From Lama glama (Eukaryota): 64,000 bases of DNA. Under the pieces are notes generated by a model. It worked only from the letters and a program-made list of their open reading frames with translations, did no database searches and was not told the DNA's origin. Position numbers and translations under genes: made by a program. The stretch covers positions 16,740,001-16,804,000 of the forward strand of contig CM052826.1 of assembly GCA_028534125.1 (NCBI GenBank). The letters are read 5' to 3'. Shown in pieces: positions 2,851-54,586 of this stretch (position 1 is the stretch's first letter; every line of letters starts with the position of its first letter).

Positions 2851-3302
2851 GTGCAGTGGGTTGAATGGTTACCTGCAGAAAGATATATCCACATCCTAAT
2901 CCCCCAAGACCCGTGAACATGATGGTATTTGGATTAAAAAAAAACCAAAACGGTCTTTGCAGATGTAATTAAGGGTTTTAAAATGAGATCATCCTGGATT
3001 ATCTGGGTGGGCTCTAAATCCAATGACAAGTGTTAAAGACACAGACAGAAGAGATAAGGCCCTGTGAAGACAGAAGCAGAGATTGGAGTGCTGCAGCCAC
3101 AAGGGCCAGGTCATGCCAGGAGCNNNNNNNNNNNNNNNNNNNNNNNNNNNNNNNNNNNNNNNNNNNNNNNNNNNNNNNNNNNNNNNNNNNNNNNNNNNNN
3201 NNNNNNNNNNNNNNNNNNNNNNNNNNNNNNNNNNNNNNNNNNNNNNNNNNNNNNNNNNCTCAGTTGTGGCGAAAGGTTACAGCAGTTGTGGGAAACTAAC
3301 AC
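2851..3302 (+). mobile_element. MLT1 (MaLR) LTR, contains N gap
   Basis: ggtctttgcagatgtaattaagg...gagatcatcctggattatctgggtggg...ttacagcag..ggaaactaa. Confidence 0.75.
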
Positions 3303-7370: not shown

Positions 7371-7475
7371 TTTCTTTCTTTCTTTCTTTTTTTCCAATGG
7401 AGGTACTGGGGACTGAACCTGGGACCTAGCACAAACATGCTAAGCATATGCTCTGTGCTCTGTAGAGCCACCCTC
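7371..7475 (-). mobile_element. tRNA-derived SINE (camelid type), antisense
   Basis: (tttc)n tail, tggaggtactggggactgaacctgggacc...catgctaagca; imperfect TSD tacctctacatttct/tacttttacatttct. Confidence 0.75.
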
Positions 7476-8269: not shown

Positions 8270-9920
8270 GAGCCCTGTTGAGCGGCACAAGCTGCCCCGG
8301 GAGCGGCCAGGAGCTGACCTTTATTTATCGCCCGTGGTAGAAGCAGCTAATTAAGTCCCCCGCCTGCGGGAGACCTTTCCCCAGGGCGGCCCGCGCCTCC
8401 TGCGGGGCCGAGATAGTCGCGGTCGCCCGAGCAGCGGTGACCTTTCCGAGCCTAATGGGGCGGGGAGGCGGGAGAGCGAGGGCGGCTGCGCTTTCGGCCG
8501 GGTCTAGGCAGAAGCGGTGGCGGAGGCGTCACTCTGGGGCTGAGCTGTGGAATGGAACTCTGTCTCGGCTCCGCACGTCCATCCTACCAACATGGGGAGG
8601 GAAAGAGGGCCGGTGATGTCATCGAACCCCGAGCCGGCCTCCGCCGCCACCGTCACAGACGAGCAGCGCTGCGTCACCGCATTCTTTCGTGACGTCAGCG
8701 CACGAGGCCAAGAAGTGGTCCACCAAGGAAGGGAGAAGTCTGAAGGAGAGATCGTTGGTTTCTCGCTCTTTATATTTGGTAAGGCGTTTAAAGTACGCAA
8801 GGAACGGACTACCACTCCCAGCTGGCTGTGCGTGCCGCGCACGCACACGGCCTCCAGCGAACGAGCGCGGCAAACCTTGGGGTAGATTGACGTCCCTTTA
8901 GTCGAACCAGAAGGTAGATTTTACAGCCGCAAACCAATCCCGACCTCACAGACCCCACCCCTTTATTCTTAGCCCTCTGCTTCCTTGAGGGAGTGACGGG
9001 CTCGGATGCCTTTGAGGGCTCAGTTTCCTTTGATGGACAGTCATACTGATGAATCAGAACGCCGGAAAGTCGAGAGGACACTGAAAAGCGTGCCTCGGAG
9101 CCAATAACTTAGCGGCAGGGCCCGACGCCGTCCAGTAATTTTTCACGGCGCCGCCAATCACCCTGGACCCCGCCCCGGNNNNNNNNNNNNNNNNNNNNNN
9201 NNNNNNNNNNNNNNNNNNNNNNNNNNNNNNNNNNNNNNNNNNNNNNNNNNNNNNNNNNNNNNNNNNNNNNNNNNNNNNNNNNNNNNNNNNNNNNNNNNNN
9301 NNNNNNNNNNNNNNNNNNNNNNNNNNNNNNNNNNCGGGGACCCCGGCACGTTCTGTCCCCCTCCCAACATCGCCTCCGAGACCTCTGGAAAGCCCTTCCG
9401 CGGACAGAAGTGGGGAGAAGCCGAGGTAACTGGGACGGCCCTAGGGTGGCGGGCCGGGCCGGGGAGGGCGGCGGGGCCCGGGCGGCGGGTGTCGCTGTAA
9501 TCATAGTCTTGGGTGAAGGGGCGGGCGGTCAAAATGGCGGCGGCGACTGTCGGGGCCATGGGGGATGGGGCCGGGGCCCGGCTGGGGCGACACCACCCGC
9601 CCCCGGGCCCCGCGGCCCGGCCCCCGCGAGGGGCGGGCGCTCGCAGGCCGGCAGCTAGTGGAGGTCGGCCGGCCGGGGTGGGGGGCTTTTATATGTCGGG
9701 AGGTGCGGAGGGGCGGGACTGGGAAGGCTGGGCCAATGGGAGAGAGGGGGTAGCGAGGCGGGACCGAGGTGGGTGGGCGGGGCCAGGCCGTAAGGTGTGG
9801 GCGGGGCCGGCCGGTGCCCCGGGAACCGGGTGGGGCAGCTGCCGTCTAGGCCTTCCGGCTGCCCTAGGCAATGGGAGGCCACCTGTGCCGCGTCCCTTCA
9901 GAACCCGCCAGGACTGAGTG
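8270..9920 (+). promoter_or_regulatory. RFX1: CpG-island promoter of RFX1
   Basis: Sharp rise in GC/CpG; GC boxes; CRE TGACGTCA 8690-8697; YY1 motif CAAAATGGCGGC 9530-9541; CCAAT boxes; boundaries approximate; contains an N gap. Confidence 0.85.
8500..8778 (+). other. RFX1: RFX1 exon 1 (5' UTR; start approximate)
   Basis: Strong donor TTTG|GTAAGG at 8778/8779 within the CpG island, upstream of the ATG-bearing exon; TSS not determinable from sequence. Confidence 0.65.
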
Positions 9921-25200: not shown

Positions 25201-28200
25201 CGGGCACGGTGTCGCAGCAGCTGCAAGTCCACAGTGTCCCGCAGAGTGTCCCCGTCACCCAAGAGGTACCAGGCCAAGGCGGGCAGTGGCAGGGGCGAGG
25301 GATCCTGGCCAGGCGGCCTCTGCGTCCTCCTTCAGCTGTCCGTGGGATTTGCAGTAGGGAAGGCCAGTGACAGACAAGCAGATGGGGGTCCAGCCCCACC
25401 TTGCCACCTGGGCCTTTGGCAAGCACCTCTGCTTCTCTCCAGACTATGCATTCTCATCTAAATAATGGCTTCTGCCCTGGGGGCCTGGGGGCCTGGGAGC
25501 AGTGTGGTTGGGGCTGCTGTGAGGATGAGATGCCGTCCTGGTGGAAAGCACCTCGCATTGAACGGGCCCTGGAAATGGCTTCAGAAAACAACCTGAGCCT
25601 CTTTGAGCCCATTTGCCTGGAGAAAACCCCAAGGCCAAGTCTTGGCTCACCCCTAAAGGGCTCAGGGAGAGGCCTCAGCCTCCAAATCCATGCCCAATCT
25701 TCTGCAGAAGGCCTCATTCGAGCTGCCAGCCATGGCGGCCAGAGCAGGTTAAGAAGCAAGGGTTGTCTGTCATCTGGTTGGTAGCACTCAAGTTGAGGGG
25801 TTCCCAGCCCCTTGGAAAACCAGATGAAAGCCACAGACCCTTTCCCTGGAGGAGAGCAGAAACCCCACCCTGGGATTCATAGGTATTCTGCTGCCTGGCC
25901 TCCCAGCCTCCCTCAACCTCTAGACCTAGGTTCAAGACCTGGCTCCATCACTCAGCATCTACCCTCCCCCCAGACTCTGTCCCTCACTCTGTGCCTGAGG
26001 ACGCAGAGTGAGCACAGAAGTGAGGACAGTCCGCATCATGGAGGTGGGGGTGTGAGATAACCCACATAGGGAGCTGGGGTGGAGAGCAGGGACTCACTCT
26101 TTTCTTACCGGGCTGCTGTGAGGCTTACAAGTTCATGTGGGCAGAGGGTGGTGCTTGGGGACAAGTGGGCAGCCATCCTCACCATGGTTACCATATTCTG
26201 ACTCACCTTTCCTTCCCCAGAGGTCTGTGGTCCAGGCCACTCCACAGGTGCCCAAAGCTGGCCCCGTGCAGCAGCTCACAGTGCAAGGGCTCCAGCCAGT
26301 CCATGTGGCTCAAGAGGTGTGTGTCTCCCCCACCTACTTCTGGGCAAACTAGGGCTGGGCCCCGGGCTGGGCTGGGGAGGGGAGAGGTGCAGTCCCTTCA
26401 GGCCGCAGGGAGGGTGTGGAGCTACCCTGAGGGGATTTAGTTGGGTGTGGGGGAGGCAGCTGGAGCCTTCAGAACCGCAGCCTCACCCTGGGCTCCGTGG
26501 GCTGCAGACGCGGTCCTGTAGCCTTCCTCTTTCCCCGCACCTGGCAGTTCAGGGCCCAGGATTTGCTAAGAGATACCGGATTCTCCCCTCCCTGACTCGG
26601 GGTGGGCATCTTCTGGTCGGGTTGCTGCCTGAGCTCAGCNNNNNNNNNNNNNNNNNNNNNNNNNNNNNNNNNNNNNNNNNNNNNNNNNNNNNNNNNNNNN
26701 NNNNNNNNNNNNNNNNNNNNNNNNNNNNNNNNNNNNNNNNNNNNNNNNNNNNNNNNNNNNNNNNNNNNNNNCCACGCCGCCACCGGAGCCGCCGCCCCGG
26801 CCGCCCACGCCCGGGCCCCGGCCGGGCGTGCTGGCCCAGGAGCCACCGCCGCTCCCGCCCGCGTGCAGCGGCGAGGCCCCGCAGCTAGGCAGCCCCGAGC
26901 CGCCGCCGCCCCATTACGAGCTGGGCGCCGAGCAATGGGTGGAGCTGGTGGGTGTGCTGCCCCCGCACCTGCTCCTGCCGCAGCAGAAAGTGGTCCTCGA
27001 GCCACTGCCCGGGCTCCCGGCCCAAGCCAGCCCCGACCAGAGGGTCAGGATCCAGAGAGTCCCCCAGGTGCTAGTGTTCGGCACGGCCGCCACGGCCCTC
27101 AAAGTAGGTGGCGGACGCACGGGCAGGGTGCAAGGGGCGGGCGGGGCGGGATGCGCTGGCCCCGGCCCGTGCCCGGCCCCCGCAGGCCTTGTAGACCCCC
27201 ACCTCCACCCGGCCAGTCTGGTGACCTGCCTCTGATTCCCCTAAAGCGGGCTCCATGTCCCAGGCTCCGCCCCTACAGACTGGGGTGGGGGATGGGGTGG
27301 GGGAATTCAGGCCCCGCCCCTAAGGCTTTGTCTGTAGTTCCAGGTTCTGGCCCACAAATGGGGCCCCACCCCTGGCCCCGACTCCACCCCTAGCATCCTG
27401 TGAACCCCCCCGCACCCCCCCCCGACCCTGTTCATAGGAGTATGTCCCTGATGCAGGCTCCAACTCTGAGGCCTTGTCTGTAGTTCCAGGCATCGACTTT
27501 AGTGACAGCCTTGTCCCAGAACTTGGCTCTGCCCCTGGAGTTCAACTTTCACACTCAACAGTAGGAGTCTGGGGTCCCCTCTGGCCACCTTACCTCAGGC
27601 CCCACCCTTGCTGTCCCCAGCCCAAGCAGAGAGTCTTGGCTTCTCCTGACACAGTTGTGCCTAATTCCCAGCCTGTGGGCCTCTGACCCCTGACCCAGTC
27701 CAGGGTGTTCAGAGAGCCCAGAAGTGCAGCCTTCCAGCTAGGTGTCCCAGCGAACTTAGGCAGCTGCCAGACCTTTAGAAGCAGAGGCAAGGAGTTGGCC
27801 CACCCCTGACCCTGTATACCCTTCCTCCCACACCAGGTGCAGCAGCTCCAGCAGGTGCCAGTCCCACATGTGTACTCCAGCCAAGTGCAGTATGTGGAGG
27901 GCGGCGATGCCAGTTACACGGCCAGCGCCATGTGAGTGGGGGGGAGTGCTGGGGGAGGGGACAGGAGGAGGGGCATGGGTCTGCCCAGGATCCCCCAGGA
28001 CTTGAGGCCTCAGCCCTCAGTGAAGCAGCCAGCCTTCAAGGCCTCAGGTGACAAATCAGATGGTGGGTACTCCCAAACGGCAGCCTGCCACCACCAGGAA
28101 GAGGCAAAACAGAGGGACCCTGGCACGTTGGGAAAAGCATCTCAGCATAGCTTAGGGCTTTGGAGTCAGGTGGGGTGGTTCTTTGCAAAAAAACCCAAAA

Positions 28201-34200: not shown

Positions 34201-37200
34201 GAGGCTTGAAGGGGCAGGCATGTGGGGGATGAGGGGCCTCATGGTGTCTCTTCTGTCCCCAGATGCCTCAAGGAGCCTCCCTGACTTCTCAGAGCTTGAC
34301 CTCCAGGGCAAAGTGCTGCCCGAGGGCGTCGGGCCTGGGGATATCAAGGCCTTCCAGGTCCTGTACCGGGAACACTGTGAGGTAGGGCTTGTGGGCAGCG
34401 GGCAGGGGCAAGGGAGGGCCATGCAGCCGCCCAGCCTCATGAACACCCAGCCTCCCCAACAGGCCATCGTCGATGTCATGGTGAACCTGCAGTTCACCCT
34501 GGTGGAGACGCTGTGGAAAACCTTCTGGAGGTACAACCTCAGCCAGCCCAGCGAGGCGCCGCCGCTGGCTGTGTGAGTGCCTCTGCATTGAGGCAGGGTG
34601 TGGGAAAGGAAGTTGGTTGGGCACCATGTGAGTCAGCATCCAAGGCTGAGGGGGCCAGAGCTCAGACTTCGTGCAGGGGTGGGGGCTCCTGTCTGCCCCT
34701 GCAGTTTGTGGGGTGCACATGCCTTCTGAGCCCCGCTCAAGCATGTGCATGTGTACCAGTCTGATGCTCGGTGTATGGGATGACATGACCCCCAAGCCAT
34801 TTCCTCGCTGTGGGTGGGTAGGTGCCTGTGCCCTGGTATGCAGGGTGTAAGGTCCCTCTCTGACCCTAGGGGCATCGTGGCCTGGGTCAGCCTCACCCTG
34901 GGGGTCTGCGAGAAGCAGGGAGTACCTGCCTGATCCCTGGGTGGGGTGGGGGTGCTGTGCCCTTCTGACTCTGGATATGAGACCATGGAATGTCCTTGTG
35001 ACCCTGGGGTGGGGTGGGTGCCCACAGGCACGATGAGGCTGAGAAGCGGCTGCCAAAGGCCATCCTGGTGCTCCTCTCCAAATTCGAGCCTGTGCTCCAG
35101 TGGACCAAGCACTGTGACAACGTGCTGTACCAGGGCCTGGTGGAGATCCTTATCCCTGATGTGCTGCGGCCCATCCCCAGTGAGTGTGCAGCCCCTGGTC
35201 CCCCCACCCCGCCCCACCCCACCCCCGAGTCCCGACCAGTCCCCGCTACCACCCACAGGTGCCTTGACCCAAGCGATCCGGAACTTTGCCAAGAGCCTGG
35301 AGAGCTGGCTCACCCATGCCATGGTGAACATACCCGAGGAGATGCTGCGGGTGAAGGTGAGTGTGTGAGGGAGGCTGAGGGCCAGCTTGGGCCCACAGCC
35401 TGGCTCCTCCTTTCTGGCTAAGGGGCTGTGGGTTGGGGGCCTCGGTCTTCTGTGCCCGACAGAGGCAGTAAGATTTGTCCCCATGTTGTTCCCTCGGAAT
35501 GAACTTTGGGCGTTGTCTTTACAAACGAGCTTCCTCGGGTGCACACTTCTGAAACAACCCATTTGTGGTATTTTTGTATGCAACACAGCATCTTAAAAAA
35601 ATAAAAACCCAGTGCAAACTTGAACTAGTTCTTTTCAGATAACTTCAACAGAAAGTGCTTTTGTGTTCAGAATGAGATAAAATCTAAGACAAAAAAAAAA
35701 AAAGAAAATCTATAAGGCAACAATATTGGCCCTCTTCATCAAGGCTGCACATTCACTAACTACCAAGATGTGAGGAATTAGATGGGATGTGCTTGCTCTT
35801 GAGCAAACAATAATAATAAAAAGAAAGAAAAAGTTGTTTTTTTTAAGTCTTTAAGATGCTAACAAGACAGCTAAACAGAACTAAATGTCTGAAGAATGAC
35901 CCTTGGGTATGCTGGACACAGGGCAGGGCCCCGGGAGAGTAGAAGCTGGATCTAGGGGGGAAGCCCTTCTGATCTGGCAAGATTTAGATATTCATTTATT
36001 ATATATGCATTTATTGAGCACCTGCTGTGTGCCCAGCATGGTTCTCAGTGTTGGGACCATAGCAGTGACCAAGATGGACAAAACCCTGGCCCTTCCGGAG
36101 CTGACATTCAGGGGAATAATATCCAAACAAAATGAAACAGAAGGTTATGGAAGCAATGCCCTTTCTGAGCCGTGGCTTCTGGTATTTTCTTGTGTTTTTT
36201 CATTAAAAATAATAATGCTGTTCAGACCCACATTGATTTATCTGCACCCATTCTTTGAGTTGGTGGACACCCAAAGTTTGGAAATCCCGACCCTTTGGCC
36301 CCCCCCCAGTAAAAGCAAAAGGTACATCCCTCTCTTTTAGGAGGAAGGCTCACAGAGGTTGCAGTGGGTGGGGCCGGGACGGCGCGGGTGGGTTCCGCTG
36401 AAGCCACAAGCCTCGGGCCCCACAGGTGGCAGCGGCCGGCGCCTTCGCGCAGACACTGCGGCGCTACACGTCGCTCAACCACTTGGCGCAAGCGGCGCGC
36501 GCTGTGCTGCAGAACACCGCGCAGATCAACCAGATGCTGAGCGATCTCAACCGTGTGGACTTCGCCAACGTGCAGGTGAGCGCGGACGGGGCAGGCGAGC
36601 ACGGGTAGGTCCGGTGGGACAGGCCTGGGGCGTCAGCTGAGCCGCGGGCACTCGCTCCGCTGTGTCCCAGGAGCAGGCCTCATGGGTGTGCCGCTGCGAG
36701 GACCGCGTGGTACAGCGGCTAGAGCAGGACTTCAAAGTGACGCTGCAGCAGCAGAATTCACTGGAGCAGTGGGCAGCCTGGCTGGACGGCGTCGTGAGCC
36801 AGGTGCTCAAGCCATACCAGGGCAGCGCCGGCTTCCCCAAGGCCGCTAAGCTCTTCCTCCTCAAGTGGTCCTTCTACAGGTGCGCGCTGGCCGGGCGGGA
36901 TACGGGCGGGAAAGGGGCTGGGCCAGAGGAGGCTCCTCCTACCGCGGCTGGACCCAGAAAAGGTTCTGGGGCCAGGCCAAAATTGGACCAGAGAAGGCCC
37001 CGCCTCCTCGGGGGGGTGGGGTGGGCCTATATGAGAACACGCCCCCTTGAGGGTGGGACCACAGAAAGCCCTGCCTCCAGAGGGCTCACGGGCCTTTTCT
37101 GAAGGCCGGGGTCTTGCTGACGATGGGCGGGGCTAGGGCCCTCCTCCATCTTTCATGGACGCCCTAGGGAAGCCTGGACGGGGCCCCGCTGTGGTAGCTA

Positions 37201-37877
37201 GGCTTGCTCAAGCCTCGGGTCTTTGCGGCAGGGCATGGGGGCGAAGGGGTGAGTCCGGGTCTAAGGGTCTCCTCTCTGCCACTGCCCCAGCTCCATGGTG
37301 ATCCGGGACCTGACCCTGCGCAGCGCCGCCAGCTTCGGCTCCTTCCACCTCATCCGACTGCTCTACGATGAGTACATGTACTACCTGATCGAGCATCGCG
37401 TAGCCCAGGCCAAGGGCGAGACCCCCATCGCCGTCATGGGCGAGGTGCGCGCGGCGGGACTCTGAGGGCACGGGCGGGGCGTCCCTCGGCTGGACCCTCA
37501 CCCCTTCTCCTCTCCCCTCCTTCCAGTTCGCCAACCTGGCTACCTCCCTGAACTCCTTGGACCCGGACAAAGGTAGGTGAAGAGCTTCCCTACCCAGGGC
37601 CTGAGTGAGGCGGCGGCGTACAGGGGGGCTGGGGTGGAGGAGGTGCCAGCGGAGGCCTGGTGGCGCCGCTGCCCCGCACTGAGCCAGGCCTGGCCCGTGT
37701 GCCACAGACGAGGAGGAGGAAGAGGAGGACGAGAGCGAGGATGAGCTGCCGCAGGACATCTCGCTCGCGGCCGGCAGCGAGTCGCCCGCGCTGGGCCCCG
37801 AGGCTCTGGAGCCACCGGCCAAGCTGGCGCGGACGGACGCGCGCGGCCTCTTCGTGCAAGCGCTGCCCTCCAGCTAA
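15965..37877 (+). CDS. RFX1: Regulatory factor X1 (winged-helix transcription factor), complete spliced CDS, 20 coding exons, 975 aa
   Basis: join(15965-16283,23075-23184,23399-23482,24167-24274,25149-25265,26221-26316,27837-27931,30688-31060,32521-32702,33710-33829,33920-34035,34263-34381,34463-34572,35028-35179,35259-35356,36426-36575,36671-36879,37291-37444,37527-37572,37708-37877) = 2928 nt; all introns GT-AG with consistent phases; [11 protein letters not shown]... start, [28 protein letters not shown]...[13 protein letters not shown], ends ...[10 protein letters not shown]. Confidence 0.98.
23075..23184 (+). CDS. RFX1: RFX1 exon 3
   Basis: acag|AA; [17 protein letters not shown]...QGTQQ; |gtagga. 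Confidence 0.95.
23399..23482 (+). CDS. RFX1: RFX1 exon 4
   Basis: [28 protein letters not shown]; |gtaagg. Confidence 0.95.
24167..24274 (+). CDS. RFX1: RFX1 exon 5
   Basis: [36 protein letters not shown]; |gtaggt. Confidence 0.95.
25149..25265 (+). CDS. RFX1: RFX1 exon 6
   Basis: [19 protein letters not shown]...VPVTQE; |gtacca. Confidence 0.94.
26221..26316 (+). CDS. RFX1: RFX1 exon 7
   Basis: [32 protein letters not shown]; |gtgtgt. Confidence 0.94.
26772..27103 (+). CDS. Putative alternative RFX1 coding exon in intron 7 (5' boundary in or just before N gap)
   Basis: 110 open codons [18 protein letters not shown]...[22 protein letters not shown] ending at phase-0 donor AAA|GTAGGT, in frame with exon 8; CpG-rich. 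Confidence 0.5.
27837..27931 (+). CDS. RFX1: RFX1 exon 8
   Basis: [31 protein letters not shown]; |gtgagt. Confidence 0.96.
30688..31060 (+). CDS. RFX1: RFX1 exon 9 (poly-Gly)
   Basis: [13 protein letters not shown]...GGGGG...[10 protein letters not shown]; |gtaagt. Confidence 0.97.
30899..30970 (+). repeat. Coding (GGN)n repeat, poly-Gly/Ser of RFX1
   Basis: [24 protein letters not shown]. Confidence 0.9.
32521..32702 (+). CDS. RFX1: RFX1 exon 10 (DNA-binding domain)
   Basis: [25 protein letters not shown]...[10 protein letters not shown]. Confidence 0.98.
33710..33829 (+). CDS. RFX1: RFX1 exon 11
   Basis: [39 protein letters not shown]. Confidence 0.97.
33920..34035 (+). CDS. RFX1: RFX1 exon 12
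   Basis: [17 protein letters not shown]...QQYQQFL. Confidence 0.96.
34263..34381 (+). CDS. RFX1: RFX1 exon 13
   Basis: [17 protein letters not shown]...LYREHCE. Confidence 0.96.
34463..34572 (+). CDS. RFX1: RFX1 exon 14
   Basis: [36 protein letters not shown]. Confidence 0.96.
35028..35179 (+). CDS. RFX1: RFX1 exon 15
   Basis: [21 protein letters not shown]...PDVLRPIP. Confidence 0.96.
35259..35356 (+). CDS. RFX1: RFX1 exon 16
   Basis: [32 protein letters not shown]. Confidence 0.96.
36426..36575 (+). CDS. RFX1: RFX1 exon 17 (dimerisation domain)
   Basis: [30 protein letters not shown]...DFANVQ. Confidence 0.97.
36671..36879 (+). CDS. RFX1: RFX1 exon 18
   Basis: [22 protein letters not shown]...FLLKWSFY. 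Confidence 0.97.
37291..37444 (+). CDS. RFX1: RFX1 exon 19
   Basis: [31 protein letters not shown]...PIAVMGE. Confidence 0.97.
37527..37572 (+). CDS. RFX1: RFX1 exon 20
   Basis: [15 protein letters not shown]; |gtaggt. Confidence 0.95.
37708..37877 (+). CDS. RFX1: RFX1 exon 21 coding part (acidic tail, stop)
   Basis: [20 protein letters not shown]...[13 protein letters not shown]. Confidence 0.96.
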
Positions 37878-39123
37878 GACCGCGGCCTCCCCCGCCCCGC
37901 CCGCCCACCCTACCCCGCCGCCCCTCCTCGCCAGGGTCCCTCACAGCTTCTGTGGCTTCGCTGTCACCGCTCCAGTTTCGGCCAGGGCCGGGAGGGGGCC
38001 TCCGAGACAGGGAAGGCAAGGGGGTCCCCGCCCACTATGGGGCCGCACAATCACAGGGCCGGGCGGAGCCGCAGCTGCAAACTCTGACACAAAAGACGTG
38101 CCTTAAGGAACCCGCCGCCGTGCCCAGGTGCCCCCTGGGGCAGCCAGCTTGGCCCCTTGGCCCTAAGNNNNNNNNNNNNNNNNNNNNNNNNNNNNNNNNN
38201 NNNNNNNNNNNNNNNNNNNNNNNNNNNNNNNNNNNNNNNNNNNNNNNNNNNNNNNNNNNNNNNNNNNNNNNNNNNNNNNNNNNNNNNNNNNNNNNNNNNN
38301 NNNNNNNNNNNNNNNNNNNNNCATCACCTGGGGACCCGTCACTGTCAGCAGCAGTCCCGGGACCCCTCCCCCAGCAACCCCACCGCTTCCCCTTTCTTGG
38401 TATAAGTGCAATTAAAGCCGTGGGTGTCGCATCTTCTCCAGAGCTGGGCCCTCCCTTGCCCCACAGCCCTAGAGCGGGGCACTGCCTGGCCTGGATAGGG
38501 GGAGGGCAGCAGGGGCACTGCCTCCAGCTTCCAAAGAGCAGCAGGCTGGACCGGGCAACGGAGCCCGGAGGGGCCTGCCGCGGGCAGCGGGCCTGCTCCA
38601 AGTGCCCGTGCCTGCCCCAGCCAGGGCCGGGTACTCCGCTTGATCAGATCCAAGACCCTGAGTCCCGGGCCCTCCTCGCCGCTGGTTTGTAATGGAACCT
38701 CCATGCTCCTTCTCCCCCTGGAGACCTTGCTTCTCCTCCGTGCGTGCGACCCTGCCCCCCACATGACTATTGTGCGATTTGTGAGCGCCGCCTGAGCGGA
38801 GTTGGTAACTTGTTGGGTTTTTTTCCAACCATCATGGCCTTATCTGTTCCGGTTTTCTCAGTGTTTTCAACCTGTGAGATAGATGTTTCTGGCAAAAAGC
38901 GAAAAAAAAAAAAAGGAAAAAAGAAAAAAAAAGAAAAACCTGACCTATTGTATAAAAATCACTATTTTGTGTGCTCCGTGTGCTACAGCTTTTGGGGTGG
39001 CTTGCCCACTCTCCCTCCCTACCCCTCGGGGCCTCCCCTCCCCTGGCGGTGAAAGTGTCCACAGGTGTGGTAGTCTAGTGTGCCGAGCTGTTTTCTACCT
39101 TTTTGTAGTCTTTCTTAAAACAC

Positions 39124-39782: not shown

Positions 39783-42700
39783 CTGCAGGGAAGGATGAGG
39801 ACGGAGCCTTGGAACTTCTGCTCACCCAGGCCTGTCCCCCTAACTTGATATGGGCCCAGAAGGTTCTGGAAGGCAAGCACCCTACTGAGTTATCTTCTGA
39901 CTCCTGCCTACAGCCAGTTAATAAATGTCTGCTGAATGAATGAGTGACTGGCCAGGGCCCCCAGGTGTCACACCTGAGCTGCCTCCCCTCACCCCAATGC
40001 CACAGTGTCCACTAGCACAGCCAACGTGCTCCACCATCCAGCAACACTTAGGAGTGAGCACCTGCTCCGGGCCCAAGCCCCAGGATAAGGACTTCAGTCC
40101 TGACTGTTGTCAGGTCACAGGGCCCACCTTTGTGCAGTGCCTCGTTGGTCATCCTGTTGACATATCGGCCGCTGCTCTCAGGCACCAGCCACTTCATGAC
40201 CATGTCCACACAGCTCTTGCGGTATGAGCTCCAGACGCTGCCGCTGAGAGAGACAGGTGCGCAGCTCTCAAACCAGCCCAACCTGCCCCCAGCCCTGGCC
40301 CCCCCAACCCCAGCCCTGCCTCACCTGGTCTGCCCTTTGACCTCAGTGAGGTCGCCCACGCTGACTGTCACAAAGATGCCTGTGTTGAGGTCCCATGCCA
40401 CCTTGAGGCTGGTGTGATAGGTCTTTGGTCTACAGTGAGGAGGGGTGGTGAGCAGAAGATAAAGGGGGTGGGACCACTTGGTCCCTGAGCTTGAAACCCA
40501 GCTACCCTGAGGGGCTTTCGTCTTTGGAGCAGTAACAAAGTTTTAGGAGCAGGAGAGTCTTCTCCCACCCCACCCCCAGCACTGAGGTGTCTTCAGTGCA
40601 GGACCCTACTGGGCAAGGGTGAGGGCGGGCTCCCTGCCCTCTCACCGGAGCTGGCCTTCCTCGGTGGGGGACGGGAACGCCAGGAGCAGCAGGCCGATGT
40701 TAATGAGGACCTGGTTGGTTTCTGGGCAGACCTGGGTTTGGGGGGTGTGGATGGTGACAGCTATTGAGAAAGCCGCCCAGAGAGGGAGGTCCTGGGCCTG
40801 CCCTGCCCCACCCCTGGGCCCACCTCCAGGATGACGATGTCATAGTCGCTGAAGGAACAGAACTGGTGACCCCAAGTGGCATCATGGCGGATGACCTCGT
40901 TGATGACATACTCGAAGTCCAGCGTGAGCTGTTCCACTGTCAGGTACTGACCCTGTGGAGAGTGGCCAGAGGCTTGCAAGAGGAGGCCTGCACCAACTGC
41001 CAGACCAGCAAGTTCCCCAGGAGCTGCCCCTCGGCCTGCCCGCTGCCAGCACCAACCTGGACAGCAGCTCGCTCCCGCATGGGCCGCAGGTTGCGACCTC
41101 GGAGATCAGTCACCACGAAAGGCAGGGAGATCTTGTCATCCTCAAACTCTGAGGGGGCAGGATGTGGGGGTAGGGATGGCAGTGGGAGGCCTAGAGGCCC
41201 CTCCAGGCCAGCCTCCCACACCTGGGACCCTGCCCGCCGAGTAGGCCCCCTGCTCACCATCCTCTGGCTCCGTCCCCTCGCTGGACCCCAGCACGTAATA
41301 CAGCTTGGTGTAGTTGACATATCCAGGCTCAGGGGCAGGTGCCTCTGTGGCAGTGGGGCTGTCCCGGGGCACTGCCTCCCCACCTGGGGCTAGGGGCTCA
41401 GAGGGCAGGCGGCAGCGGCTGTCTGAGGGCCCTGGGCAGGGGGGTGGCCGGACTTCCTCTGAGGCTCCACCCTTGGCCTCTTTGGCCCTGCGGAAGATGT
41501 CGGCCACAAACTCCTTGGCTTTGGCGATGGCGGGTGAGGGCTCGGGAGCTCCAGAGGGCCGGGCTGGGGCTGCTTCAGGGCAGACGCTGGGGAGGACAGG
41601 GGGCATCTCTGGGCTCTGGGGCCCAGGGGAGCTGGGAGGGGCCGGGGGGTACGTGGTATGGTCATACAGGATTTGGCAGAAGCTGCTATCGCCTGGAACA
41701 TAAAAATAAAAAGTGATGGAGGTGGAAAGGGGTCAACAGATGGGTTCAAGATCAGGACGCTCTCCTGACCTCCTTAACTCTGGAGGGTTCTTAGAAATCT
41801 TCCTTGAGGAGACCCTTCTAGAAGACTTACATATGCTGAGATCAGTCTGAAACACCCAGAAGAGAAAAAGGACTTTTAGACACAAACATGTGTGTGTGTG
41901 CACACATGCACTGACTTGTTCATTCAAACCTTATTCTTGGGCGTCTGCTGTATGCCACACTCAGGTCACAGGAGTGAACAAAACAGACAAAAACCCCTGC
42001 CCTTGGGGAGCTGACAGTCTATGATGATGAAAGATAGAAGCCACATAAGTCTGAGAGTTTACTACACAGCCCTCTGTCCTCCCCAACCTGAGCCAGACCA
42101 GCACAGGCACAGCCTGGCTGAATCCCAAACCTCTGTCTATGACTCCACCTGACGGGGGGCCAGAACCCCTGGGGAATGTATGGTCAGTGTGGAGGACCCC
42201 AACACATTCACCAAGCAGCACCGTGGCTGGGCCCTGGGCTCTGCCTGCCCTGCCTCCTTTGGGCCACCACAAGCAACCCCTGGATAGGAGAACTGTCCTC
42301 CCAGCTCAGAGACTCGAGGCTGAGGCTCAGAGAAACTTGTCCAAGGTCACACTGAGAGATAATGCAAGCCAACCAATGCACTCTTGTCTGCCAGAGTGGC
42401 AGCACTTCCAGAGGGAAGGGGGATGATGTTCGAGTTAAAACTCCCCGTCTGTGTAAATACCCTCCTATGGTGAGATGAGGGTTAAGACACGGGTAACAAT
42501 GCCCCTCACCTGGGCCTTGTGCACACGGCCGGATCTTGTGCCATGTGGTCCTTCCTAACTGGGCAGGGGCCCTCAGCCCCATCCAGGCCTGGCTTGCTGG
42601 GGACTCACAGCATGGCGAGAAGCAAGGCCTTGTCCACGCCGGCACAGGCGGCCAGGGCAGGGGCGGGAGGCCCCTGGCTGGTTCGTGGGCTTAGTTATAT

Positions 42701-45700
42701 ACATGCAATTTTCCTTTCATGTCCATTCTCCCTCCCCTCCACAGGGGCAACAGGGATCTTTATTTACCGGATTCTTGTCAAAAGTGGAACACATTTCTAA
42801 TTTATCTATAAGCGGCATCTGTATCAGATTCTAGACCTCCCTGTGTTCTTTCTGTATGAGCATGTCTTCAAGGCATGCTCTCTACAGCCATGCATGCTCG
42901 GGCTCTCCTTGGGCCTGCTGATCCAAGGGGAGTGCCCACCCTGTCCTACCTCTCCAATCCCCGGGGGTGGATACCAGGCTGCCCCCAGCTCCTGCCACCA
43001 GAGCCTTGGACATGCATGGCTGTGGGGCTGCTGGGCCAAAGGTACCCTCTGTTGCCATGAGTATCAGAGAGCCCCCAGGGCCCCATGTTGTCACCAGCCA
43101 GTGGCATTATCCAGCTTCCTAACGTTTGCCACTCTGTCAAGCAACATCATCTGATTTTTACTGGCATTTCTCCAAACACCAAAGATGTAAGATAGCCATC
43201 TGTCCACTAACCACTCCTTGAAATTTTTAAATTAGCATTTCTCTTTCTGAAGAGAAGGAAGCACTGCACCGTCTAGTATGGTAGCTGCTGACTACATGTG
43301 ACTATTTGAACTAACATTAACTAAAATTAAATTTAATCACATGAGACACTTTCAAGTGGCTACTGGTGGCAACTATAGCAGACACTGCAGATATGGAACA
43401 TCCCAGCCCCTGTGGAAAGTTCTAGTGAACAGCACTGGGGTGGGGTATGGCTGGGTTCCCACTTTCCCGCTTCCTGGCTGTGACCCTGGAGAGGGACTTC
43501 ACCTCTCCCGGCCTCGGTCTCCTCATCTGTGATGTGGGGGTAGTGACAAGACCGACCTCCTGGGGCTGCTTGGCCAAGTCCATGGATCACAGGCCCTGAG
43601 GCTGACAGTGCGAGGGGGGCCTGCCTGCTGTCCAGGTTGGTGCTGGCAGCGGGTAGGCCAAGAGGCAGCTCCCGGGGCTTACCTGCCGAGTNNNNNNNNN
43701 NNNNNNNNNNNNNNNNNNNNNNNNNNNNNNNNNNNNNNNNNNNNNNNNNNNNNNNNNNNNNNNNNNNNNNNNNNNNNNNNNNNNNNNNNNNNNNNNNNNN
43801 NNNNNNNNNNNNNNNNNNNNNNNNNNNNNNNNNNNNNNNCGCGCTCGGGTCACCTGCAGCAACACAGGCCACATGGCTCAGTTGTGGCCCCGGGGCGGAG
43901 AGGCAGGCAGCCCGCACCCCGGGCTGCAGCCCCTCACCTGGGTGGGCCCGGATGGCATCCCGGCAGGCGGCACAGCGGCCTGGTGGTGGCACGGCCACAG
44001 TGCTGATGTAGATGTCCCGGTGGTTCTCGTCACTCATCATCATCATGTTCATGAGCATGCCATTGGCTGAGCGGGTGCTGGGGGCCAGCACAGCCTCAGC
44101 AGCCCGGCCCAAGCGCCCACCCTCACCCACCCTCGGCCTCCCTGGCCCCAAGTCTCACTTGAAGCCGAAGACAATGACCTTGGAGGCATCACTGGGCCAT
44201 TCACACACGGTCAGGTACAGGTCACTGTAGATCTCTTCGTCTTGGAAGAGCCGCACCTGCCGGACCTGAGCAGCATGTTTGGGTAAGGGTAGGGTGGGAG
44301 CATACCCGGGGGCCTACGGGGGGGCCCCACCCGAGGCTGAATGATGCAGCCAATGTCAGGCCAGGGATCCCCAAGCCGCCCCCACCCCAAATCCCTCTGC
44401 CTTCCTGAGAACAGGCTGAGGAAGCTCCCAAGTGCTTCCCTTCACAAGCTGGGGACACAGGGAGGGAGGCTGGGCCCAGGACAGGATGCAGCCAATGGGA
44501 GCTCTGCCCAAGCAGAGGGGGCTCAGCCAGACACATCAGTTCCAGGCCTGACCCACCCTGAGACCTGCTCACCTCTCTGAGCTCATGTGCGAACTGGGGT
44601 AACAGCACTCACCTCCTGGGGTGGGGCATTTGAGGAGTCAAGGTCAGGGCTAAAGTGGCAGTGGCAGCCCGCTTGGTCCTAACAAAGCTAATGGGTCCCT
44701 CCTGGCCTGAGCCATTGAACCATATGAAATTACTGCTGTTTACCCATTTTCAACTCTAAAAATGGCAATTTCCTATAGTTCGACTCAACACTTGGAGTCT
44801 TGACAATGACTCCATGGGTACACTGTCTCCATTTTACAGCCATGGAACCTGCAGCTCAGAGGGGTGCCGTGACCTGCAGGAGTCATGCTGTTAGAAGGGA
44901 CAGCCCAGTGCCAGGCCCAGCCCTACCAGCTTGAGCTTGCTGTGGACGTTGAACTCCCACCAGTAGAGGTGGTAGATGTAGAAAGAGAAGTCGTCATCCC
45001 CGCTGCTGCTGGTGTAGGAGAGAACGTAACGGCCGCACTTGGAAAAGCCCAGGAAGATGTGTCTGTGGGGTGGTGGGAAGCGTCGAGTGGCCAGGTCAGA
45101 GGACAGCCTGCCACCCCACCCAGCCGCCCCCCTTGCTTGGCCCCAGCCTCACCCTGCATAGAGGAAGTCTTCATCCACAATATTCTTGAGAGAGACGCAT
45201 ACCCTGGGTGGCAGCTTTCGGAAGAGGCGAGGAGAGAGCTGCCCACTGATCTGCGGAAGGGACAGCCAGGGCTCTTGACGCAGGTGGCCTGCAGCCCCCT
45301 AGTCCCCTCACCCAAGGCAGAGCCGCACCCTTGGTGTCCAGCTCAGCCCAGCCCAGCCATACGGGCCCATTCCCTGCCAACCATAATGGTCTAGGTGGTC
45401 CAAGCTCTGGAAGGTGCGAACCGCTCGAGCCTGATTCTCTACCAGGGACGCGTGCCACCCTCCTGACTCCGTATCTCTTTACCCTTAGGGTTCCTCTTGC
45501 CCAAGCCCCTGGGGTCTGAGAACTAGCACTAGCATCACTCCCCCAGAAAGGTTCCCCAGTCACCCCTGGCCCACACTGGGCCACCTAGCAGCCTTCCTGA
45601 AGGCTGCCACTCTGCACAATGAGTTGCGGATGTCCAGGACCACTAAGGTGGCTGGGATGGGGGCTTGATCAACTACACTCAGCTGTCCCTAACTCACTAG

Positions 45701-49662: not shown

Positions 49663-50053
49663 ATCTTAGTCTGTTTAGGCTGCCATAACAAAAATACTAT
49701 AGACTGAGTGGTTTTACAACAAACACATTTCTCACAGTTTCGGAGGCTGGAATATCCAAGATCAAGATGCTGGCAGACCTGGTGTCTGGTGAGGGTCCAC
49801 TTCCTGGATTGTGGACAGATGCCACCTAGCTATACCCTCACATTGCAGAAAGAGAGAGCAAGAGAGAGGCAGGCAGACAGAGAGAGCGCNNNNNNNNNNN
49901 NNNNNNNNNNNNNNNNNNNNNNNNNNNNNNNNNNNNNNNNNNNNNNNNNNNNNNNNNNNNNNNNNNNNNNNNNNNNNNNNNNNNNNNNNNNNNNNNNNNN
50001 NNNNNNNNNNNNNNNNNNNNNNNNNNNNNNNNNNNNGAATTCAGTCCATAGCA
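49663..50053 (-). mobile_element. MLT1 (MaLR) LTR, contains N gap
   Basis: ggctgccataacaaaatactatagactgagtgg...ttctcacagttt.ggaggctgg...attcagtccatagca. Confidence 0.75.
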
Positions 50054-51114: not shown

Positions 51115-52087
51115 GACCTAAACAGACATTTCTCCAAAGAAGACATACAGATGGCTAACAGGCACATGAAAGACATTCAACATCACTAATTACTCGAGAA
51201 ATGCAAGTGAAAACTACAATGAAGTATCATCTCACACCAGTCAGAATAGCCATCATTAAAAAGTCTACAAACAATAAATGCTGGAGAGGGTATGGAGAAA
51301 AGGGAACCTTCCGACACTGTTGATGGGAATTTAAATTGGTGCAGCCACTACAGAAAACAGTATGGAGGTTTGTTACAAAACTAAAAATATTTGTATCTTT
51401 GTCTATTTTTATACTTTTTATAATGTTTGTTTTTGTTCTCAATATATATATCATATAGTATATAAAGTGTTTCTCCCCTAAATCTGTCAGTCCTTGAATA
51501 TAGTTTCACAGAATACTTACGTTTACTTTCTATTTTCAAAAACTTACTATGGGAAACACTCTTTGGAAACAAATGTGTTATATGTGAAAAAAAGAAAAGC
51601 TGTATAGAGATTCCTTAAAAAACTAAAAATAGAGTTGCCATATAATCCAGCAATCCCACTCCTGGGCATATATCCAGAGAAAACTCTAATTTAAAAAGAT
51701 ACACACACCCCAGTNNNNNNNNNNNNNNNNNNNNNNNNNNNNNNNNNNNNNNNNNNNNNNNNNNNNNNNNNNNNNNNNNNNNNNNNNNNNNNNNNNNNNN
51801 NNNNNNNNNNNNNNNNNNNNNNNNNNNNNNNNNNNNNNNNNNNNNNNNNNNNNNNAGCAACACATATGGCCTTAGAAATGATCATGCTAAGTGAAGTAAA
51901 TCAGAAAGAGAAAGACAAACATCACATAATATAACTTTTATGTGTACTCTAAAATATGATACAAATGAACTTATTTAAAAACAGAAATAGACTCACAGAC
52001 ACAGAAAACAAACTTCTGGTTACCAGAGAAGAAAGGTGGTGGGGAGGGATAAATTAGAAATAAAAATTTTTTAAAGGAAAAAAAAAT
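51115..52087 (+). mobile_element. 5'-truncated L1 with 19-bp target-site duplication
   Basis: ORF2 C-terminal/3' UTR text (aacagacatttctccaaagaagacatacagatggc...), A-rich tail, TSD agaaaatcacatggtccca at 51096-51114 and 52088-52106. Confidence 0.9.
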
Positions 52088-53409: not shown

Positions 53410-54160
53410 ACATTAAAAAAATTGTGGTGACATGTATATAACATAAAATTTACCATCTTGGCTTTTTTTAAGTGTACAATTCAGTGGCATTAAGTACATT
53501 TGTATTGTTGTGCAATCATCACCACCTCCATCTGCAGAACTTCTCCATCACTCCAAACAGGACCTCTGTCCTCATTAAACACCTACTCCTAACCTTGTCT
53601 CCCCCAGCCCCTGGCACCCACCATTCTATTTTCTGTCTCTATGAGTTCAAAACTCTAGGGACCTCAAGTAAGTATAATCATACAGTATTTGTCCTTTTGT
53701 GACTGGTTTATTTCACTTCATCNNNNNNNNNNNNNNNNNNNNNNNNNNNNNNNNNNNNNNNNNNNNNNNNNNNNNNNNNNNNNNNNNNNNNNNNNNNNNN
53801 NNNNNNNNNNNNNNNNNNNNNNNNNNNNNNNNNNNNNNNNNNNNNNNNNNNNNNNNNNNNNNNNNNNNNNNNNNNNNNNNNNNNNNNNNNNNNNNNNNNN
53901 NNNNNNNNNNNGGTCAGTTCCTTGCTATGGTTTCTTTGGGTGTATATCCAGAAGTGCAATTGCTGGAACATAATTCTATGTTTAATTTTTTTTTTGAGGA
54001 ACTGCCATACTGTTTTCCACCCCAGCTGTACCATTTTACATTCCTCAAGGTGTGCAAGGTTTGCAATTTCCCTATATCCTTGTTAACACTTGTTACCTTC
54101 TGGGTTTGGGTTTTCTTTTTTTGTTTTTTAATACAAGCTAACCTAATGGGTGAGATCGTT
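53410..54160 (-). mobile_element. L1MB-like fragment, antisense, contains N gap
   Basis: taacataaaatttaccatc...aagtgtacaattcagtggcattaagtacatt. Confidence 0.75.
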
Positions 54161-54586
54161 TACTTTTTAAATAAGTATTAGATTCACACAATTCAAAATT
54201 CAACACGAGGAAGACCTAGAATGGGCAATAAGCACATGAAAAGATGCTCAACATTATTAGGCATTAAGGAAAAGCAAATAAAGTCACAATCATAGACCGC
54301 TACATACCCTCTAAAAAGGCTCCAATTAAACAGACTGACTATACCAAGTGCTGACAAGGATGTGAGGGAACTGGGACTCTGTTAGGCTGCTGGTGGGAAT
54401 GAAAAATGACACAACCAAGCTGGAATACAGTTTCTCAGGTTTTCAAAAAGTTAAATGCACACCTACCATACGATCCGGCCATTTAACTCTTACATATTTA
54501 CCTAAGAGAAGCTTTTTAAAAGACACATGAGGACATTATATGAAGTGAAATAAACCAGTCACAAAAGGGCAAATACTGTGTCTTTT

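Follow-up and report, generated by a model that had tools for sequence, protein, structure and literature searches.

Base pairing of a donor (5' splice site) makes it less accessible to U1 in MAPT exon 10 and in terminal stem-loop 2 (TSL2) of SMN2 exon 7, in both cases within short local stems of less than 10 bp. Over larger distances, two complementary regions of one pre-mRNA, one of them near a donor, can enclose exons, as described for the catalogued pairs of complementary regions (PCCRs; PMC8052449) and for BRD2/BRD3 (PMC10789245), with exon suppression or unproductive splicing as the predicted outcome. Within the PCCR catalogue, looped-out exons are included less, complementary regions are depleted over active splice sites, and within 75 nt of splice sites, very stable ones are avoided (PMC8052449). 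Complementary sequences of 30 to 40 nt or more also flank exons that are circularized (Liang & Wilusz 2014, PMC4201285), while template switching is known as a de novo source of inverted repeats and RNA hairpins (PMC5453318, PMC8794818). Here, we describe a new example of two of these known kinds, templated inverted insertion and long-range pre-mRNA complementarity, in the DCAF15 gene of the llama, Lama glama; the structure is real and unusual, but its origin appears clear and ordinary. The gene lies on the minus strand of a stretch of 64,000 nucleotides (GenBank assembly GCA_028534125.1, contig CM052826.1, positions 16,740,001 to 16,804,000), hereafter called the window, and carries a 53-nt inverted repeat that links the start of intron 6 (arm 1) to the junction of exon 8 and intron 8 (arm 2). 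A first-pass annotation of the sequence had proposed that this repeat forms an evolved, regulated splicing switch. We consider it reasonably probable, instead, that arm 1 is part of a 58-nt templated insertion that arose in the camelid lineage, not a conserved regulatory element, and that the resulting helix constitutively lowers the efficiency of the exon-8 donor in a fraction of the transcripts.

Regarding the repeat itself, the first-pass description proved accurate. A repeat search and a scripted count found the arms (coordinates in Table 1) to be complementary at 49 of 53 positions (92%), with the final 29 nt perfect and 2557 nt between them. A gapped extension of the homology past these 53 nt was not found, and a nearby 23-nt inverted pair (I10) was ruled out as a continuation of the repeat, since it is not colinear with the arms. 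The 26-nt core of the arms is present in the window in two exact copies (zero expected, on the basis of 100 shuffles), and the pair is the sole inverted repeat in the window of at least 40 nt, with its halves at most 10 kb apart, that is not derived from a short interspersed element (SINE) or an L1 element. With only two copies in 64 kb, and with arm 2 being a single-copy exon-intron junction conserved in mammals, a transposon-derived inverted pair was rejected; a search of both arms against Rfam returned no match, and the earlier impression that neither arm looks like a transposon can be retained. The other inverted repeats of at least 40 nt in the window are a pair of tRNA-derived SINE fragments (1822-1876 and 7373-7427; 78%) and a pair of L1 3'-end fragments (53682-53721 and 54540-54579; 98%).

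The ages of the two arms were assessed from open reading frame (ORF) calls in protein collections that read from an exon into the next intron, i.e., at the peptide level; the primate-like ORFs P0003, P0005, and P0237, which may be human, were left outside the argument. In the exon-8 read-through ORFs of about 15 other mammals, intron 8 opens with Val-Gly-(Ala/Val)-Gly, and several of these non-camelid ORFs (P0230-P0236 and others) go on with camelid-related sequence (..QAEGQL.., ..QNQGQP.., ..QARGQP..). Because about 15 mammals share the same start of intron 8, arm 2 and its GTTGG donor are, judging from these reading frames, ancestral. The picture for arm 1 is the opposite. Exon-6 read-through ORFs of four non-camelid laurasiatherians continue from ..SAG with Arg-Pro-Pro, Arg-Ser-Pro, or Arg-Leu-Pro into a shared ..TAFAV.., and the peptide encoded by arm 1 was not found in any of the four. 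By their exon-5 residues, P0186 and P0189 match Carnivora/Equus, P0187 matches the bat Eptesicus exactly, and P0192 matches bats (31/32). In the camelid read-through, ..SAG is followed by 19 residues encoded by arm 1, after which ..AG-Arg-Pro-Pro appears again in another frame. P0189 has the same downstream MIR stretch and the same ORF end as the camelid sequence but 25 codons (75 nt) fewer between exon 6 and the MIR. The MIR-like SINE core in question, located in intron 6 (about 43470-43560, minus strand), encodes a read-through peptide shared with P0189 (where it reads ..HVTEEETEAQRG..) and serves as an orthology anchor downstream of the insertion. Since the exon-6 read-through ORFs of the four outgroups lack it, arm 1 is taken to be derived and lineage specific. 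The first-pass annotation had itself held that a lack of conservation in other mammals would speak against its switch, and this is what the four laurasiatherian ORFs point to, as far as the comparison reaches.

What the first-pass annotation did not notice, although it recognized the inverted homology of arm 1, is a 13-nt direct repeat that brackets this arm and marks it as a templated insertion with duplication of the exon-6 donor. The two copies of the direct repeat are identical at 11 of 13 positions, a value that the same geometry reaches at only 8 of 61,938 window positions (1.3e-4), and copy 2 reads ..AG-Arg-Pro-Pro, like the start of the intron in other mammals. Arm 1 is, then, a reverse complement of nearby sequence, is derived (with the outgroups compared at the peptide level only), has microhomology at both junctions, and carries a switch-and-return scar. 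Because the direct repeat and the 4-nt microhomology at both junctions fit a switch and return, we favor a two-step template switch as its origin. During replication or repair, the nascent strand would have departed after ..GCAG/GTAGGCCCC (the slash marks the exon-intron boundary) and would have primed, via CCCC, on the complementary GGGG of intron 8, on the opposite strand and 2.56 kb off. About 49 nt would then have been copied in reverse across the exon-8 donor, up to ..GACAGCAG, before the strand returned via the GCAG microhomology at the end of exon 6, 13 nt behind its departure point, and the donor region was copied a second time. The net gain would be 58 nt, comprising an antisense copy of the exon-8 donor at position +6 of intron 6 and an exon-6 donor that is duplicated 58 nt apart; under this insertion reading, the junction in the outgroups is expected to be present once, as ..CAG/GTAGGCCCCCC... 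The 4 differences between the 53-nt arms and the 2 between the 13-nt direct repeats are too few to date the event. Since this divergence is, in our own judgment, far below that expected after at least 60 Myr of neutral intron evolution, the insertion probably took place within the camelid stem or crown.

The duplicated donors appear to have changed since. The upstream copy would have turned into the consensus GTAAG, and the downstream copy would have lost its GT to GC: the Arg codon of the outgroups implies an ancestral donor GTAGG or similar, as opposed to the GTAAG of the camelid upstream copy. Use of the downstream copy would shift the reading frame, and both changes thus favor the frame-preserving site, which is suggestive of selection to repair splicing after the insertion, although two changes do not amount to proof.

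Table 1. Features of the DCAF15 locus, in positions of the window (a slash marks an exon-intron boundary)
Feature	Positions	Strand	Remarks
Exon 6	43683..43853	-	171 nt; donor CAG/GTAAG at 43683/43682; interior 43692-43839 = N
Direct repeat copy 1, GCAGGTAAGCCCC	43674..43686	-	Contains the active exon-6 donor (43683/43682); last 4 nt (CCCC) = first 4 nt of arm 1
Net inserted block	43625..43682	-	58 nt: new donor intron bases GTAAG + arm 1; inferred from outgroup ORFs and direct repeat
Arm 1	43625..43677	-	Reverse-complement copy of the exon-8/intron-8 junction; in intron 6, +6 to +58 of the exon-6 donor
Direct repeat copy 2, GCAGGCAGGCCCC	43616..43628	-	Ancestral donor position, now GC instead of GT; first 4 nt (GCAG) = last 4 nt of arm 1
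Exon 7	41258..41692	-	435 nt; disordered segment
Exon 8	41057..41148	-	92 nt
Arm 2 (source)	41015..41067	-	Last 11 nt of exon 8 + donor CAG/GTTGGT + 42 nt of intron 8
Intron 8	40953..41056	-	104 nt
Exon 9	40824..40952	-	129 nt; premature TGA at 40884-40882 if exon 6 is joined to exon 9

With four-point template switches (Loytynoja & Goldman 2017, PMC5453318; Monttinen & Loytynoja 2022, PMC8794818) and with insertions by fork stalling and template switching or microhomology-mediated break-induced replication (FoSTeS/MMBIR), the camelid event shares a reverse-complement copy made in one event, a perfect stem created de novo, microhomology at the junctions, and a switch-and-return scar. It differs from four-point events in that its template lies 2.56 kb away, versus tens of base pairs, and from the local hairpins left by template switching in that its product is a long-range pair across two exons. 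Unlike in other template-switch scars, moreover, a functional 5' splice site was duplicated where the strand returned. On balance, the event resembles long-range switching of the FoSTeS/MMBIR type more than the four-point model.

Nothing in the arms suggests that their pairing has been under selection. All four differences between them are transitions, which read as three G-U pairs and one A-C mismatch on the minus (DCAF15) strand and as one G-U pair and three A-C mismatches on the plus strand. The first-pass annotation had seen selection for pairing on the DCAF15 strand in this bias, a claim that we had to abandon: three G-U pairs out of four give a one-sided binomial p of 0.31, and the strand argument carries no weight because any transition is a G-U on one strand and an A-C on the other. 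When polarized with the non-primate outgroup ORFs, three of the changes fall on arm 1 and one on arm 2 (CCG to CTG); all of them are one-sided, two are instances of CpG decay, and none of the four is compensatory. C-to-T changes on the sense strand, together with CpG decay, would account for the G-U bias. The perfect 29-nt end was likewise rejected as a sign of selection, as it contains no CpG and its counterpart in arm 2 consists of coding and donor sequence; none of the CpGs of the ancestral arm falls within the perfect 26-nt core. The arms therefore seem to decay in a neutral-looking manner. While the conservation of both arms with compensatory changes is a mark of PCCRs, the camelid pair includes a lineage-specific arm that is absent in four laurasiatherians, and its one-sided differences show no covariation.

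As for stability, the camelid pair goes well beyond its relatives. The predicted duplex between the arms amounts to -121.6 kcal/mol on the DCAF15 strand (-114.5 kcal/mol on the other strand), while the arms folded singly reach -20 and -25 kcal/mol, leaving a net gain of about -76 kcal/mol for the duplex over the local hairpins. When the 2,752-nt stretch that begins with the end of exon 6 and stops at the start of exon 9 was folded as a whole, 52 of the 53 helix pairs were part of the minimum free energy structure, with a pair probability of ~1.0. The 53-bp duplex is, according to this model, thermodynamically dominant in the pre-mRNA segment, a result that pertains to equilibrium and is silent on kinetics, proteins, and helicases. 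Like PCCRs, the two arms are stable, duplex-forming complementary segments of one pre-mRNA. Unlike PCCRs, the predicted helix covers an active constitutive donor, a configuration that is depleted in the catalogue, and it is far more stable than typical members. All three PCCR tendencies cited above are broken here, which is to be expected from a recent accident but not from a refined element. Relative to MAPT exon 10 and SMN2 TSL2, which likewise have a paired donor, the difference is one of scale, the camelid helix being 53 bp long and closed over 2.5 kb.

A weak exon-8 donor, which the first-pass annotation regarded as part of the switch, was rejected as an element of design. The U1 duplex energy of this donor (-9.4 kcal/mol) is comparable to those of its neighbors (-8.1 kcal/mol for exon 7 and -8.9 kcal/mol for exon 9), and the GTTGG donor is ancestral across placentals. 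Arm 2 is partly palindromic (41030-41067, minus strand), with a local stem (CUGCUG.UCCAG / CUGG.CAGCGG) that places the first intron bases of the exon-8 donor, GUUGGUG, in its loop (-25 kcal/mol for the whole arm). The read-through of the exon-8 junction as Val-Gln-Val-Gly-Ala-Gly is common to several mammals, and this local donor hairpin may for that reason be ancestral. In its sense orientation, arm 1 ends in ..ACAGCAG/G (43625/43624) after a moderately pyrimidine-rich run and so looks like a 3' splice site; this end is unlikely to pair with the exon-6 donor, which is only 58 nt away.

To relate the helix to splicing, the gene had to be mapped. Its identity as DCAF15 follows from exon 9, which matches the DCAF15 chains in PDB at 43/43 positions, and from exon 7, which is 99.3% identical to that of Camelus dromedarius DCAF15; a Pfam search with single exons gave no match, the pieces being too short. 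The splice map was read from splice motifs, with the exons treated singly and the frame of the skipped isoform taken from exon 9 alone. All splice-site, exon, and frame coordinates of the first-pass annotation agree with these motifs and with the ORF frame. Its inferred consequence of skipping also holds in silico: exons 7 and 8 together span 527 nt, so their loss would shift the frame and lead to the TGA at 40884-40882 (the frame of ORF 40882..41055). This stop would lie 58 nt ahead of the end of exon 9, with four more exons and four junctions downstream, and a transcript whose premature stop precedes a junction by more than 50 nt is a candidate for nonsense-mediated decay (NMD).

We propose, then, that the two arms may pair over 53 bp, with the exon-8 donor hidden inside the helix, the exon-6 donor at its edge, and exons 7 and 8 in the loop. 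Such a helix would probably form in a fraction of the transcripts and would make the exon-8 donor constitutively less efficient; the outcome would be some intron-8 retention, or some skipping of exons 7 and 8 followed by NMD, with normal mRNA still being made. That normal mRNA is made is indicated by the DCAF15 models of Camelus dromedarius, which join exons 6-7-8-9, in combination with the finding that all DCAF15 exons in the window are intact (tblastn of the protein against the window). The first-pass annotation was right to place the exon-8 donor inside the duplex. Its picture of a free exon-6 donor brought to the exon-9 acceptor is too simple, as a helix that starts at +6 would crowd U1 at this donor. 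A constitutive, partial loss of efficiency is our best estimate, and a fully silent scar is its main rival.

Several points weigh against this combined reading. With respect to origin, the published four-point template-switching model spans tens of base pairs, not 2.56 kb (PMC5453318), and other routes of templated insertion, e.g., end joining by polymerase theta or the filling-in of a staggered break, would leave a scar like this one. The outgroup evidence is at the peptide level and comes from unlabelled ORFs, whose taxa were deduced from 32 exon-5 residues. The insertion is dated only to the interval from the split with Carnivora, Perissodactyla, and Chiroptera, the orders matched by the outgroup ORFs, down to this camelid. 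With respect to effect, the duplex is predicted from a computed fold, and its influence on splicing is putative. Finally, a helix of this stability on a donor in use might be expected to do serious harm, and yet several organism labels share it as a fixed feature; either unwinding in vivo or some usefulness could lie behind this.

The first of these two possibilities leads to the most serious alternative, which we consider possible, if clearly not the favored one: the insertion exists, but in vivo its helix seldom arises or is soon opened again, by co-transcriptional loading of U1 and SR proteins, by local hairpins, or by helicases, and DCAF15 splicing is unaffected. Each arm does have a local hairpin of its own, the annotated dromedary mRNAs are spliced normally, and the arms decay like neutral sequence; besides, thermodynamics alone does not predict the effect of a repeat (Liang & Wilusz, PMC4201285). 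Against a silent scar stand the energy gained by the duplex over those very hairpins and its pair probability in the full segment. Arm 2 is, moreover, transcribed ~635 nt past the acceptor of intron 6, so that arm 1 is probably still present when its partner emerges. The RNA data, too, contain more than exons alone explain. Five RNA runs (X15-X20) hold 0.32-0.37 of the sampled words of 40824-43691, while we calculated that exons 7-9 alone would yield a share of ~0.20 and exons plus introns 7 and 8 one of ~0.30. The excess is a weak hint at RNA contigs in which introns 7 and 8, along with the 3' end of intron 6, remain unspliced; pre-mRNA or DNA carry-over would look alike.

A bolder version of the proposal would be that a camelid template switch gave DCAF15 a built-in 53-nt antisense to its own exon-8 donor, which diverts a substantial share of the pre-mRNA to NMD forms that skip exons 7 and 8 or retain intron 8, and which has been kept because it sets the dose of DCAF15. 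We regard this as unlikely. The evolved, regulated switch of the first-pass annotation, in which the NMD isoform lacking exons 7 and 8 tunes the dose of the ligase, possibly within an RBM39 feedback loop, seems to us quite unlikely. In its favor, the geometry and the premature stop hold up, the helix is of very high stability, correct definition of exon 6 is favored by both changes in the duplicated donor (so that there seems to be some splicing-related selection at the locus), and structure-controlled unproductive splicing is known from BRD2/BRD3 (PMC10789245). On the other hand, arm 1 is absent in four other mammals, compensatory substitutions are lacking and the G-U bias is nonsignificant, no regulator or condition is known, and the helix, abutting the exon-6 donor, would hinder that donor and not merely reposition it. 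Neither for regulated switching to NMD nor for feedback with RBM39 is there support beyond the geometry, and both are speculation. A literature search for DCAF15 in connection with long-range RNA structure or skipping of exons 7 and 8 found no paper, and DCAF15 is not in the searched supplements of the PCCR catalogue.

The flanking complementarity could also, instead of causing linear skipping, drive the back-splicing of exon 7, or of exons 7 and 8, into a circular RNA. Inverted repeats of 30 to 40 nt suffice for circularization (PMC4201285), and the length of exon 7 would favor it. Even so, we find this option very improbable: the exon-8 donor that a circle of exons 7 and 8 needs lies inside the helix, 1.9 kb separate arm 1 from the exon-7 acceptor, and overly stable hairpins can inhibit circularization (PMC4201285). 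Unlike the repeats of Liang & Wilusz, the camelid arms are not Alu or other SINE sequences, and one of them overlaps a donor, while the other occupies the extreme 5' end of the intron upstream.

That arm 1 is an assembly artefact beside a gap, a worry raised in the first-pass annotation, is scarcely credible. Arm 1 does lie 15 nt from an N run, but the artefact is opposed since this run and its flanks add up to exactly the 171-nt exon 6 that the dromedary protein needs (making it a same-length mask and no assembly gap), since the arms differ at four positions, and since nine DNA runs, from three studies with four organism labels and with one sample not flagged as a possible source, contain 0.99 of the 300 words sampled from 40824-43691. 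Across all 14 DNA runs (six studies, five organism labels), this share is 0.97-0.99. Absence of the 58-nt block would remove ~3% of the sampled words, so that runs at 0.97-0.98 fit its presence and its absence alike; we infer that the nine runs at 0.99 must carry it. The window has eight N runs of 132-189 nt in all: besides the one in exon 6 (43692-43839), they are located at 3124-3258, 9179-9334, 26640-26771, 38168-38321, 49890-50036, 51715-51855, and 53723-53911.

If the helix of our preferred reading, i.e., the templated camelid insertion with a partial effect on splicing, does act in vivo, the locus would be a natural experiment in which one datable mutation placed a near-perfect antisense over one constitutive donor and duplicated another. 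The later point changes, from GT to GC in the spare donor and from GTAGG to GTAAG in the one that is used, would then show the gene coping with it, and the idea that RNA hairpins arise by template switching would apply not to local stems alone but also to pre-mRNA structures that span kilobases and involve splice sites. Should the less likely dose-setting version be true, a natural splicing regulator would have been made de novo by one replication error, and should the helix be without effect, the locus would offer a case of a tolerated duplex of -120 kcal/mol over a donor. In each case, the scope is limited to camelids, with no bearing on DCAF15 regulation in other mammals.

Some further observations concern DCAF15 isoforms and the neighborhood of the gene. 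Isoforms that join exon 6 to exon 8 are annotated in Rhinolophus sinicus (isoform X2, P0167), Ciconia boyciana (P0164), and Acipenser ruthenus (isoform X2, P0199). Skipping of exon 7 (435 nt) is in frame and drops a disordered segment of 145 residues; it may be an old, productive alternative that is independent of arm 1. Two models of Camelus dromedarius (P0149 and P0150) have 16 or 30 additional residues after ..HSKLKL (about 44300-44900 in the window), with a similar insertion in Sousa chinensis (P0163), a hint that, between the exons for residues ~120-125, alternative splice sites are used or an intron is retained. In a model of the bird Tinamus guttatus (P0010), 20 unrelated residues stand between exon 6 and exon 9; the loss of exons 7 and 8 there is probably due to a gap in a GC-rich region and not to biology. 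Lastly, the C-terminal exons of RFX1 (about 36200-38000, plus strand) converge on the 3' end of DCAF15, as in other mammals.

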